Shown: positions 3,995-7,949 of the stretch, piece by piece | Position numbering within the stretch: position 1 is the stretch's first letter | Layout of the letters: the number at the start of each line of letters is the position of its first letter | From: Pelomyxa schiedti | Lineage: Eukaryota > Protista > Evosea | DNA: 64,000 nt | Direction: 5' to 3' | Assembly (NCBI GenBank): GCA_020536535.1 | Contig: JAHLWZ010000633.1 | Span: 43,407-107,406 of the forward strand | Program-made: the position numbers and the translations under genes | The notes under the pieces: model-generated | What the model was told of the DNA's origin: nothing | What the model saw: the letters and a program-made list of their open reading frames with translations, nothing else | The model's database searches: none

Positions 3995-6900
3995 ATGTCC
4001 TCGTCGAGGTCAACCACGACAGCGACGGCGGCTCCGACAACTACAACGAGCGCGAGGACGAGCGCTAGTGCCGCAAGGGTCCGGTGCGGCCTAGGGGTGG
4101 GGGCGCGTCTGTTGGACAAAATCCAGCGCACTGTCGTACGCGGGGATCCCTGGCGCATGACGGGCATGCTGGAGGGCGGCGACACCCCCGCCTTCTCGGT
4201 GAGCACGTTCATGGACCCCGAGACGTGCGACGACGGCTGCTCGACTCTGGCCGCCGCCCTGAGCTTCGCACTGGCCCACCGCTCAATGCCCTGCCTCGAG
4301 GCGCTCGTCGCACGCCGTCTTACAGACGCACCCCCCGCTTGTTCCTTGGCGGATCAACTTCCAAACCCTCAGACGAGAACAACTACGTCAAGCTCGACTG
4401 CAATTGCAATTGAAAATGGAAATGGAAATGAAATTATACATGCTGCTATTAATACTGGTACTACCCCTAGTTCCACTTCCAGTGCCAAGGGAGTGGAAAC
4501 TGATGTTTCCAGTTCCAACTCTGCCACCACTTCCACTTCCAGTTCTAGTGCAAGTGAAAACGAAACTACCACTCCACCATTACAAAGGACAAGAAGGCCT
4601 GCTCGTTTACCTCTTGACTTGCACAACGCATCTCTCCCATCAGTATCTGGGAGGCGTCCACTTGTGGTTGCTGTTCTATGGTGCCGCCGTGCAGTCGAGC
4701 TACTTTTGCAGGCTGGCGCTGACCCAAATGACGGCACAGCCCTTGCCTGGGCTGTGGATATGAATCCGTGTTGTGTGCTGCCTCTTCTGCATGCTGGGGC
4801 TAGTCCAGTGGCAGCGTGTGCTGTTCCACCACCAAAGTTCCCATCCTCGGGTACTCCAAGAGATAAGGCATCTGCATTATATAGAGTATTATTGCGAGGA
4901 AGCTCAAAATCGTTCGAGCCTCCCTCTGCAGGTGCTGAACTTCCACCAAATTCCGAATTTGCAAGTATCGATACAGCGCCTCAGCCATCCATAAACGATG
5001 TGATCAAGTGGCTGCTTTATAAAACATCACCAAGAGATCTGGAGCAATTCATGTTAGAGACCCTCTCTGATTGGAGTTTTGGGGGCTCTGGTCGAACTTC
5101 TTTGGAATTGGGAGCTATATGCTATGACAGAGGAATATTGACTGCTGATCAATTTTCCCGCTTTATACATGCCGCTCCAGACCGAAGGTATATTTCCTCT
5201 CTTCTTGGGAGTGTGAAATAAACAAAACCAAAACAAAAAAAAGGGAAGCAGCAAAATACAGCTTGCCATCCTCGAAAAAAGGCGACAATGATCAAGATGC
5301 ACTTCCTCCCCCTCTTCCCCCCATTGTGATTGCTTTTTCCTCGGGCAAAAGACCCCACCCAAGTCTACCTCCTAAAATTCACATTTCCGAGAAAATTTCC
5401 ATCCACCAGAAGGTTAATAGAAACGGTGACATCGCTGGAATCATCGATGACATCAAACATTCACCACCAATTCCCCGCCTGTGCCTCTCACGGAAAAATA
5501 GCTGTCTTCAAATAATCGTGTTTGAAGCAGCAATGATTTACCGTCAAATGCCTCTACTTCAGCGACTCCTCGATCACCCTATCCCCTTAGTTTCACCATC
5601 TCAAATCAAATCTCTAAATGAGTTGCAATCAACTCTTCCTGCTTTAAGTTCTACCACCACTACAACCTCAAGTACAACGACAACCCAAACAACACTTACT
5701 GGCTCAGATGAAACCAGTAAAACAATTCCCGAACCACCTGCAGAAACAGATATCGTCACACTGCCCCTTGACTTGCGGGGGATAACCCTCCCTAGAATAA
5801 ATAAGATACCTGCCCTCATTTCCGCATTACAATGGGGACCAGAGGCTGTAAAGCTTCTTCTACATGCGGGACATACCTCCAACTCCGGAGCACCATTAGC
5901 TTGGGCAGTGGACCTTTGCTCTCAAACAACTGAGCTTCTACTTCAATATCGCTTTTCAACTATAGAGCCAGGTTGTTCCCTCCCTTCATCCACTATCCCT
6001 ATGGCGCGACAACATGCCCCTGCTTTGATCCGAGTACTTTCTGATGCCACCACGAAGCAATCTTCTGTTCCCATGCTGAATTTACTCCTAGAAAACACAC
6101 GCGAGGAGGAATTGGAACTACTGTGTGAGCAAGATTTTAAACAACCCTGGGGTTGCATGGGTGATGACAAAGGGAATATTTGTAATTGGAAGTGTAAACC
6201 TTCATGTCTAGATTATGCTGTTCTCTGTTTTTCAAACCGAGCCCTTAATTCGACCCAGTTCTCTCGTTTCATACGAGCTGCCCCACAATGTGATATAGAT
6301 CCCTCAAAACTCCCCCCGGCTCCGACTGCTGTTACGTCAAGCATTATGTACCGCAGAATTCCTCCCAGTGTTCTATATATGACATGCCAACGGGGTAACA
6401 TTGAGGGAGTAATTGCTCTGCTCAGACGGGGAGCAAATTCGCAGGCTATTGTTCCGCCGTATGGCGAGACTCCTCTGCACGCAGCAGCTGCTGGAAATTA
6501 CCCTGCAATTTGCAAACTTCTTGTAGATTCTGGAGCCAAGAGTAACGTTTTGTCTCAAGCTTCCCCCGACTTGGGTCCAATGACTCCTATTGACTACGCT
6601 AGGTTAAATAGTAACTTTCAGCTCGTCCGCTTTCTTTCAGATCCTCTTAGAAGGTATACCCACTATTTTGTGAAGCCTCTCCATCTTACTTCACTTAGTT
6701 CTCTCCAAGGCCTACTTGTAAATCTGAACCTAGACTCTCAAATTACCTCATTCAGCGAGATTGCCGAACCAAATCCTCCTCCGCCAAAACAAGGGACTTG
6801 TGGCATCTGTCTCGAAGAAAGTAGTCTTCTGTCGTTGAGCCGTTGTGGCCATGCGTAAGTCAACCAAATTTGTTTTTTCCTCATGTTTCACAGATTCTGT

Positions 6901-7949
6901 CGAGACTGCTTGGACCAATGGTTCAAGAATAGTGAAACGGCACATCTCCGATGCCCAAAGCGTGGTTGCATTGGAATTGCCTCTTACTATGATGTTTTGT
7001 AAATTTCTTCTTTACTTCTGAAATGTTATCAATCCCCAGTACAGAGCTGCATTAAAGAACACAGAATCATTTGAACAAAGCATGCTTCGGAGGGGATTGA
7101 GTACCGTTGAGGGTTTTATTCACTGCCCAAAGTGTAACTATGGAGGTTTTGCTGTTTGTGATGACGCCATATGTAATGAGTGTGGACTTCATTTTTGTGT
7201 TAAATGTTTATTGGAGCATCACCCTGGTGCCTCGTATGCCTCTTTTTCCCAAAACCTCAGACCCTGCTTAAAAGCCTTAGGTGTAATGACATGACTAAAA
7301 TTCTACTTGTTGATCAATTGGAAAGGCGGAAAGAAAAGAGATTAACAGAGGAAGGCACTCTCTTAAATAAGGTTAGTTCTTTTTCTCCCACTCTTTTCTA
7401 GAATCCTTATTCCAGAATCGGTAATAAATTCCACCCGTGGTCGACACAATAAAGTGGATGAACACAAATGCCCGGCCATGCCCTCAATGCAAAGCCATGA
7501 TCCAGAAAGACGGCGGCTGCAGTCACATGACCTGCTCCCACTGCAAGCACCAATTCTGCTGGCTATGTATGCTGCCGTACATCAGCCGGCTCACCGGCGA
7601 CCAAGTTGATCCCTGCGAGAGGATTCCCGCGAAGCTTCAGTTCTCCCTGCACTACTTCACCCCAGAGCCCCAGGTGTACCTAGCCATCAGCGGCTCCATC
7701 GCCAAGCTGGGGTTATGGGACCCCTCGAAAGCTGTCCCGATGACCCGGCAGGCCTCGGGATGGTGGACAGTCACACTGGACCTCATGGTGGGATCCACAT
7801 TCTACTGGAAGTTTGTGGTGTGCAATTCAGCCGATCGCAAAGCCTTGAGGTGGGAGGGTACCCCAAACCGGCACTGGAGGGTGATATTCCAGGATGCCAT
7901 TTACACGGCCCAGTGGGAATCAACAAAGTACGTGCAACACCGACCATGA
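3995..7949 (+). CDS. Ankyrin-repeat RBR (RING1-IBR-Rcat) E3 ubiquitin ligase with C-terminal CBM20 carbohydrate-binding module
   Basis: ORFs 3920..5221 and 5263..6858 join in frame through GT-AG intron 5188..5261. Ankyrin [25 protein letters not shown]; RING1 CGICLEE..CGH|.FCRDCL; [30 protein letters not shown]; Rcat [33 protein letters not shown]20 [49 protein letters not shown] lies in the same exon as Rcat. Confidence 0.88.

Follow-up and report, generated by a model that had tools for sequence, protein, structure and literature searches.

Glycogen ubiquitination in cells has been shown only recently, and in the key experiment a CBM20 and an RBR ligase were brought together artificially: upon induced proximity of CBM20 and HOIL-1L, glycogen was ubiquitinated and sent to lysosomes (PMC13345935). 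In vertebrate glycogen quality control, the CBM20 of laforin (EPM2A) scaffolds the E3 ligase malin (NHLRC1) to glycogen (PMC9844227); laforin is a CBM20-phosphatase, and malin a RING-NHL ligase without a catalytic cysteine. HOIL-1 (RBCK1) ubiquitinates unbranched glucosaccharides and glycogen by means of an RBR module but has no CBM, whereas STBD1 (genethonin-1), a glycophagy receptor devoid of any enzymatic domain, uses an LIR and a membrane anchor to link glycogen to ATG8 and RB1CC1. RNF213 (mysterin), on the other hand, is an E3 with a CBM20-like domain in the same chain and modifies a non-protein molecule, LPS (PMC11549300); yet it is no RBR but a giant AAA protein of the dynein-like type, equipped with RING and RZ fingers, whose N-terminal CBM20 can be recognised from structure alone. 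Here, we describe a Pelomyxa schiedti gene, Pelo_8059, in which the elements found in these systems meet in one chain. As in laforin-malin, a CBM20 would bring an E3 ligase to glycogen; however, laforin and malin are two proteins, while in Pelo_8059 one chain covalently links the CBM20 with an RBR ligase of the thioester-forming class, and homology between the two systems is limited to the CBM20. The engineered pairing of CBM20 with HOIL-1L follows the same logic as this natural fusion, which has an RBR module in common with HOIL-1 and a CBM20 that resembles that of STBD1 in sequence, fold and both sugar sites. With moderate confidence, we propose that Pelo_8059 is a cytosolic RBR E3 ligase tethered, through an STBD1-like CBM20 at its C-terminus, to α-1,4/α-1,6-glucan, that is to the glycogen granules of Pelomyxa; its activity, ligand, substrates and physiological role are all inferred.

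The gene occupies positions 3995..7949 of the window, the 64,000-nucleotide stretch of P. schiedti DNA analysed (+ strand, as for all features below), and runs from a start ATG to a stop TGA over seven exons (3995-5187, 5244-6653, 6699-6854, 6894-6998, 7045-7233, 7281-7371, and 7455-7949). Its spliced translation is identical to GenBank KAH3760116.1, a "hypothetical protein Pelo_8059" of 1212 aa. The six introns (39-83 nt) are all of the GT..AG type, and the reading frame is intact. A preliminary description of this DNA had placed the first intron at 5188-5261; the annotated intron is 5188-5243, and although both forms are in frame the annotated one aligns better with the paralogues. A further in-frame intron of 45 nt (6654-6698) is spliced out in the annotated model. 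Both differences leave the RBR and the CBM20 unaltered. The Rcat and the CBM20 lie, as that description had stated, in the same uninterrupted exon (7455-7949), and they also do so in both paralogues; thus, the fusion is independent of splicing. These paralogues, 47% identical and one of them being Pelo_6410, lie on other contigs and have the same architecture, which therefore occurs on three separate contigs in all. Among the three, dN/dS is 0.18-0.25 for both Rcat and CBM20: the Rcat-CBM20 fusion is kept under purifying selection, and it is older than the duplication, the synonymous sites of the duplicates being now saturated. Could the fusion nonetheless be spurious, with no RBR-CBM20 protein made because the gene model is mis-joined, the assembly chimeric or the gene a decaying pseudogene? 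The genome was obtained from whole-genome-amplified single cells (PMC8887013), and GC3 is uneven along the gene. Yet the single exon, the three contigs, the intact frame with its six canonical introns and the purifying selection leave such an origin exceedingly improbable, and the high GC3 spans the whole last exon, not the CBM20 alone, with the 5' ends of all three paralogues also GC-rich. This distribution of GC3 likewise led us to reject a horizontal origin of the CBM20, an idea that the high GC3 had raised; the eukaryotic nature of the nearest CBM20s speaks further against it.

In one reading frame, the protein comprises two duplicated ankyrin-like modules, ankyrin repeats, RING1, IBR, Rcat and a C-terminal CBM20. 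The combination of ankyrin repeats, RBR and CBM20 in one polypeptide, claimed beforehand, is borne out by Pfam, which finds RING, IBR, IBR_1/Rcat and CBM_20 in the full protein, and the motifs then quoted are all present, RWE among them. N-terminal module 1 (aa ~169-395, 4499..5179), preceded by a Ser/Thr-rich tract, is degenerate and ankyrin-like, with weak Ank matches; module 2 (aa ~535-745, 5653..6285), kept in the paralogues, is its internal duplicate (28% identity, E 2e-20, BLASTP). Canonical ankyrin repeats follow (aa 773-832, 6367..6546; Pfam Ank_2 E 2.6e-17, Ank E 7e-13), and from RING1 to the C-terminus the protein forms a compact unit of about 330 aa. Ankyrin repeats N-terminal to an RBR, with a canonical Rcat loop (GGC-x-H-M), are also seen in ANKIB1 and other ankyrin Ariadne-type RBRs; Pelo_8059 differs from ANKIB1 in having no Ariadne or UBA-like domain, in its lineage-specific ankyrin-like modules and in its C-terminal CBM20. 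The Ariadne domain (PF19422) had no match in the protein at E up to 0.01.

The catalytic module begins with a C3HC4 RING1 (aa 901-945, 6796..6969, interrupted by the intron 6855-6893), whose zinc ligands are all present (C902, C905, C917, H919, C922, C925, C940, and C945); it is matched by Pfam zf-RING_2 (aa 901-941) and zf-C3HC4 and was aligned to RING1 of HOIL-1 and ARIH2. Between RING1 and Rcat lies the IBR (aa 982-1019, 7124..7284), which scores E 6e-7 in Pfam on exon 5 (7045-7233) alone and whose consensus H-x4-C end is restored by removal of the 47-nt intron 7234-7280. The Rcat, or RING2 (aa 1057-1086, 7479..7568; Pfam IBR_1 aa 1053-1091, E 9e-16), aligns with RING2 of ARIH2, ARIH1 and parkin. 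In RBRs the catalytic triad is defined as Cys, His and Glu/Gln (PMC9834252), and Pelo_8059 displays the canonical set, Cys1070 (7518-7520), His1072 (7524-7526) and Gln1081 (7551-7553), together with the full zinc-ligand pattern; at least 90% of 55 aligned Rcat sequences share the catalytic His. The RING1-IBR-Rcat, with its catalytic Cys/His loop, is thus as complete as first described, and by domain criteria Pelo_8059 is an RBR-type E3 ubiquitin ligase, with predicted ligase activity. Among PDB sequences, HOIL-1 is nominally the best match to the RBR (48.8 bits), but only about 12 bits span the scores of HOIL-1, ARIH2, ARIH1, parkin and HOIP, too narrow a spread to place the RBR in any one subfamily. 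The features that set HOIL-1 apart are a UBL, an NZF, a Trp in place of the catalytic His, a binuclear Zn2/Cys6 cluster and the C-terminal His510. Pfam detects no UBL or NZF in Pelo_8059, and the Trp, the Zn2/Cys6 cluster and the C-terminal His are likewise absent; His1072 stands at the canonical position and C1086 is followed only by linker and CBM20, placing the protein outside the HOIL-1 subfamily. Judged by its sequence, this is an ordinary Rcat of the Cys-His-Gln (parkin/Ariadne), lysine-directed type. Lacking the special features of HOIL-1, it gives no pointer to ester over isopeptide chemistry.

The CBM20 (aa 1108-1205, 7632..7925) is identified by Pfam, by an AF2 model and by Foldseek. 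Pfam CBM_20 (PF00686) matches aa 1111-1194 of the full protein with E 1e-12 and 48 bits, and the last exon alone with E 4.5e-14; scores of 48-52 bits compare with a curated cutoff of 23.3 bits. In an alignment of 42 CBM20 sequences, the domain matches every near-invariant column. The AF2 model of the domain alone (pLDDT 94.9) adopts the CBM20 β-sandwich fold, and its top 50 Foldseek matches are all CBM20 domains, the best being human STBD1 CBM20 bound to maltotetraose (8x8k; TM 0.81/0.93, the latter by target length; rmsd 1.0 Å). By sequence, too, no solved CBM20 is closer than that of STBD1 (E 5e-8), and the nearest relatives overall are eukaryotic intracellular proteins, namely Balamuthia DPE2, STBD1, and mollusc and ciliate CBM20 proteins. 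Sugar-site residues were mapped by alignment to STBD1 and PMC11406230. Site 1 (W1136, K1167, W1181, and N1186; W543, K578, W590, and N595 in glucoamylase) keeps all four STBD1 residues (W293/K322/W334/N339), and site 2 (H1114, Y1115, F1116, R1180, and W1202) keeps four of five (H271/Y272/R333/W355 in STBD1), with one conservative change. The earlier proposal that the binding residues are retained therefore holds for these predicted sites, which correspond to the residues that hold maltotetraose in the crystal structure of STBD1. To bind glycogen, STBD1 needs both sites (PMC11406230). The paralogues depart from this pattern: both have lost most of site 1 (W1181 is replaced by T, K1167 by Q or L, and in one of them W1136 by L), as well as the His and Gln of the catalytic triad. 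With such losses in two of the three members, canonical glucan binding and catalysis are not required family-wide. An expanded family with a varying sugar-binding site would fit a surveillance ligase akin to RNF213, in which the CBM20 reads polysaccharide on prey or on bacterial or archaeal endosymbionts and a ubiquitin coat serves their control or digestion. RNF213, which ubiquitylates bacterial LPS, has a CBM20-like domain under positive selection (PMC11549300; PMC12203941), and P. schiedti hosts intracellular prokaryotes and phagocytoses food that contains starch and glycogen (PMC10579272). Nevertheless, Pelo_8059 keeps precisely the glycogen-binding residues of STBD1, a dN/dS of 0.2 denotes purifying and not diversifying selection, and Pfam finds neither a dynein-like AAA core nor an RZ finger; moreover, symbionts and food lie within vacuoles, beyond the reach of a cytosolic CBM20. 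We regard this function as improbable. As to location, neither a signal peptide nor a convincing transmembrane segment was found in the protein.

Rcat and CBM20 are separated by a linker of about 21 aa (7569..7631) with the motif D-x-V-D-P-C-x-R-I-P-A, conserved in all three paralogues. In the two-domain Rcat-CBM20 AF2 model, in which MSA depth was available for the Rcat only, the linker has low pLDDT (~66), pTM is 0.53, and no confident inter-domain geometry emerges, which counts against the tethered ligase that we favour. It also weighs on a different role for the same domains: the CBM20 may be a regulatory sensor, glucan binding releasing the Rcat so that the state of the glycogen store is read out as ligase activity, with substrates located elsewhere and picked by the ankyrin modules. 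Autoinhibition with allosteric activation is the general rule among RBRs (PMC9834252), the CBM20 sits where Ariadne RBRs have their autoinhibitory Ariadne domain, the short linker with its conserved motif joins it directly to the Rcat, and the large ankyrin-type N-terminus resembles a separate substrate-recognition part. Still, the model offers no confident Rcat-CBM20 contact and Pfam no Ariadne-like domain or other known autoinhibitory element. Such a glycogen-gated switch, which is compatible with tethering and not exclusive of it, seems to us unlikely, if less so than surveillance.

How widespread is this architecture? A phmmer search of the Rcat-CBM20 exon against 1.84 billion representative proteins gave 5817 matches; among the best 150 of these plus extras, both halves were matched only by three Pelomyxa proteins, and no Rcat + CBM20 protein was found outside Pelomyxa, a highly divergent fusion (both halves, summed score below about 55 bits) falling outside these best 150. 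Several candidate relatives were rejected: P0002, P0004, P0006, P0009, P0015 and P0018 carry several CBMs but no RBR, P0005 and P0007 carry several RBRs but no CBM20, and P0122, whose alignment seemed to enter the CBM20, has the Rcat only. A scan of metagenome contigs with family-specific peptide patterns returned 83 pattern matches, none of them confirmed. In word-indexed searches, aa 880-1212 matched only the paralogue P0151, the CBM20 alone (282-897 aa size frame) matched nothing, and aa 560-1100, used to seek orthologues of the N-terminal module or of the Ank-RBR unit, retrieved generic ankyrin proteins covering 10-29% of the query and no orthologue. Likewise, no account of such a protein turned up in literature searches on CBM20 with RBR, IBR or E3 ligases and on starch-binding domains with RING-between-RING. 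As far as these searches reach, the architecture is thus undescribed, as had been supposed, and no other IBR+CBM20 protein was found. That the family was found in one species only, P. schiedti, counts against the tethered-ligase reading, as does the experimentally ambiguous role of the CBM20-like domain of RNF213 (PMC11549300).

Under our preferred reading, RING1 would take up a ubiquitin-charged E2, ubiquitin would pass to Cys1070 of the Rcat as a thioester, and its discharge, aided by His1072 and Gln1081, would occur at the glycogen surface, since the CBM20 lies about 20 residues past the Rcat. Ubiquitin would be accepted by lysines on glycogen-associated proteins and perhaps also by glucose hydroxyls of the glucan; RNF216 and HOIP, too, can ubiquitinate maltose in vitro (PMC9834252). 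The ankyrin repeats and the two N-terminal modules may select substrates or autoinhibit, like the accessory domains of other RBRs. The likely outcome would be turnover or regulation of glycogen-metabolising proteins, or the marking of granules for lysosomal or autophagic disposal. Numerous glycogen granules are reported in Pelomyxa cells (PMC12018496; reference list of PMC10579272). In a bolder version, the protein would be a natural ligase for glycogen itself, all in one chain: with the two-site CBM20 as its dock, it would discharge the thioester onto glucose hydroxyls as an oxyester, so that granules are marked for lysosomal or autophagic turnover. We hold this version as a tentative idea, rather doubtful at present. 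If true, a protist would in Pelo_8059 have independently evolved an equivalent of both the glycogen ubiquitination that depends on HOIL-1 and the engineered CBM20 + HOIL-1L pairing. If it acts on proteins only, it is the first RBR known with a carbohydrate-binding targeting domain and a single-protein analogue of the laforin-malin pair, which is defective in Lafora disease. Overall, evolution made by itself a CBM20-RBR fusion, and kept it under selection, in a glycogen-packed organism. This compact fused unit could bear on whether an ordinary Cys-His-Gln Rcat can modify sugars through proximity alone, on how an E3 can be aimed at a polysaccharide, and on whether ubiquitin-based glycogen quality control exists outside animals.

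The window is eukaryotic DNA whose introns are very short. Within it, the interval 3995-7949 (+) is made of long open frames with short AT-rich gaps between and holds Pelo_8059, with exons at 3995-5187, 5244-6653, 6699-6854, 6894-6998, 7045-7233, 7281-7371 and 7455-7949 (joined CDS 3639 nt) and six introns of 39-83 nt, all bounded by GT..AG. The translation of the joined exons is identical to the deposited 1212-aa KAH3760116.1 (P0001, "hypothetical protein Pelo_8059 [Pelomyxa schiedti]"), part of a published annotation produced with Augustus and refined by PASA/EVM and single-cell transcriptomes (PMC8887013). 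The preliminary description had placed the gene at the same coordinates; its first intron (5188-5261) gives way to the annotated 5188-5243, a change that leaves the RBR and CBM20 domains untouched. The annotated model also splices out an in-frame 45-nt GT..AG intron, 6654-6698, without effect on the domains discussed. If retained, it would lengthen the segment that separates the ankyrin repeats from RING1 by 15 residues; since the frame is kept, isoforms with and without it are both possible. In the protein, Pfam recognizes ankyrin repeats (aa 773-832), a C3HC4 RING1 (aa 901-941), an IBR between RING1 and Rcat, an Rcat-type IBR_1 (aa 1053-1091) and CBM_20 (aa 1111-1194; E 1e-12 in the full protein, E 4.5e-14 and 52.5 bits versus a cutoff of 23.3 for the last exon by itself). 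Two copies of a degenerate ankyrin-like module of ~230 aa, at 4499-5179 (aa 169-395) and 5653-6285 (aa 535-745) on the + strand, lie N-terminal to the canonical repeats; they share 28% identity (E 2e-20), and each comes after a low-complexity stretch rich in Ser and Thr. A sequence check found neither a signal peptide nor a convincing transmembrane helix. Rcat and CBM20 are joined by a linker of ~21 residues (7569-7631) with the conserved motif D-x-V-D-P-C-x-R-I-P-A and, as had been claimed, both sit inside the uninterrupted exon 7455-7949. Thus, the fusion is no splicing or gene-merging error, and the idea that the RBR-CBM20 combination is an artefact is hardly credible.

At the sequence level, Pelo_8059 has all the features that define RBR ligases and CBM20 domains. 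All zinc ligands of RING1 and IBR are present, as are those of Rcat save the usual second-site His. This His is missing after C-W-L-C, and the invariant linker residues D1097, D1100 and C1102 are candidates to complete the second zinc site, with no obvious fourth ligand. The Rcat loop, G-G-C-S-H-M-T-C, bears out the intact catalytic Cys/His pair noticed earlier: Cys1070 and His1072 (Cys +2), with Gln1081, two residues upstream of the C-W-L-C pair, completing the canonical RBR triad. This Cys-His-Gln arrangement is that of parkin, HHARI and HOIP (PMC9834252), and of 55 Rcat sequences aligned, 90% or more have His at the catalytic-His position. Judged by these residues, Pelo_8059 shows itself a catalytically equipped RBR, with a triad of the ordinary lysine-directed type. 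Against solved structures the RBR scores best with HOIL-1 (48.8 bits), yet ARIH2, ARIH1, parkin and HOIP are nearly equal, so no subfamily is assignable. The HOIL-1 hallmarks (Trp replacing His, Zn2/Cys6 cluster, C-terminal His510, UBL and NZF) are absent, and there is no Ariadne domain like that of ANKIB1-type proteins.

The CBM20 model (AlphaFold2, 42-sequence alignment) is a β-sandwich with a mean pLDDT of 94.9, and CBM20 domains make up all 50 PDB matches listed by Foldseek. The top match is the human STBD1 CBM20-maltotetraose complex 8x8k (TM 0.81 on query, 0.93 on target; rmsd 1.0 Å), and STBD1 CBM20 is also the top sequence match among solved structures (E 4.6e-8). The STBD1 crystal structure has two sugar sites, and STBD1 requires both to bind glycogen: site 1, formed by W293, K322, W334 and N339, and an unconventional site 2, formed by H271, Y272, V273, R333 and W355 (PMC11406230). 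In the alignment, Pelo_8059 has an entirely identical site 1 (W1136, K1167, W1181, N1186), positions occupied by W543, K578, W590 and N595 in Aspergillus glucoamylase; site 2 (H1114, Y1115, F1116, R1180, W1202) is identical at four of five positions, Val being replaced by Phe. Thus, as far as residues can tell, this CBM20 shows the complete glycogen-recognition apparatus of STBD1. Its nearest relatives, Balamuthia DPE2, fish STBD1 and mollusc and Paramecium CBM20 proteins, are eukaryotic and intracellular, which argues for a cytosolic glycogen-binding domain rather than a secreted amylase tail.

Two paralogues occur on other contigs of GCA_020536535.1, Pelo_6410 (locus L002; P0151, 1137 aa) and KAH3766962.1 (locus L003; P0003, 1108 aa, deposited as "RNF14"). 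Both have the full architecture, with Rcat and CBM20 in a single open frame. They are 72% identical to one another and 46-47% to the window protein, and comparison with the latter shows saturated synonymous sites. For the pair of close paralogues, Rcat with the linker gives a dN/dS of 0.18 and CBM20 one of 0.25. Thus, the fusion is old and maintained by selection. All three copies keep the duplicated ankyrin-like module, which has no recognizable relatives outside them beyond generic ankyrin repeats. They also share GC-rich 5' ends of ~100 codons (0.64-0.79 per 200-nt window versus about 0.40-0.57 further in; 3995-4400 in the window, 6000-6400 in both L002 and L003). In Pelo_8059, GC3 is 0.82 over the first 100 codons versus ~0.35 mid-gene, and 0.74 in the last exon. 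Such GC-rich ends look like a genome-wide pattern, not foreign origin. In the regions 9066-9656 of L002 and 8997-9602 of L003, both paralogues retain the catalytic Cys and the whole STBD1-type site 2 but have lost the rest of the triad, where Leu replaces His1072 and Ser or Tyr replaces Gln1081. Most of site 1 is lost too: Thr replaces W1181, Gln or Leu replaces K1167 and, in one paralogue, Leu replaces W1136. Both carry insertions in CBM20. On residue conservation, the window gene is the canonical family member, and the other two may form a functionally shifted subfamily still under purifying selection (dN/dS about 0.2).

So far, the family is restricted to a single species. No protein outside Pelomyxa combined Rcat with CBM20 among the best 150 (plus extras) of 5817 phmmer matches in 1.84 billion representative proteins, EukProt transcriptomes included, in word-indexed protein searches, or in a peptide-pattern scan of JGI metagenome contigs; within the reach of these searches, the suspected novelty held. 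The literature searched contained no description of an RBR-CBM20 protein, and the GenBank entry for Pelo_8059 calls it no more than a hypothetical protein.

What such a ligase does can be framed by known systems. The functionally closest is laforin-malin, in which a separate protein with a CBM20 acts as the scaffold that brings a RING-NHL ligase to glycogen (PMC9844227); Pelo_8059 differs in putting both roles in one chain and in its ligase class, which is thioester-forming. Of the earlier interpretation, architecture, catalytic loop and sugar-site residues stood, and glycogen targeting is a reading from sequence. Pelomyxa cells hold numerous glycogen granules (PMC12018496), to which an entry in the reference list of PMC10579272 also points. 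The acceptors may be proteins or the glucan. Direct ubiquitylation of glucan by Pelo_8059 seems doubtful, although HOIL-1 is reported to share in vitro ubiquitination of maltose with RNF216 and HOIP (PMC9834252), and chemically forcing CBM20 and HOIL-1L together suffices for glycogen ubiquitination in cells and routing to lysosomes (PMC13345935). That CBM20 serves as a glycogen-gated regulatory switch is rather unlikely; the Rcat-CBM20 AlphaFold model (pLDDT 78, pTM 0.53, linker ~66) has no usable inter-domain geometry and so does not discriminate tethering from its rivals. Less likely still is an RNF213-like surveillance ligase directed at prey or symbiont glycans, for which an E3 with a CBM20-like domain is a precedent (PMC11549300); by its domain features, Pelo_8059 is placed outside the HOIL-1, Ariadne/ANKIB1 and RNF213 groups. 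Overall, we suggest that Pelo_8059 is an RBR E3 with a predicted, previously undescribed carbohydrate-binding targeting domain. Probably, CBM20 would bind cytosolic glycogen and dock the ligase there, so that the Cys1070 thioester would be discharged at the granule surface, with the ankyrin-type modules possibly governing substrate choice or autoinhibition.
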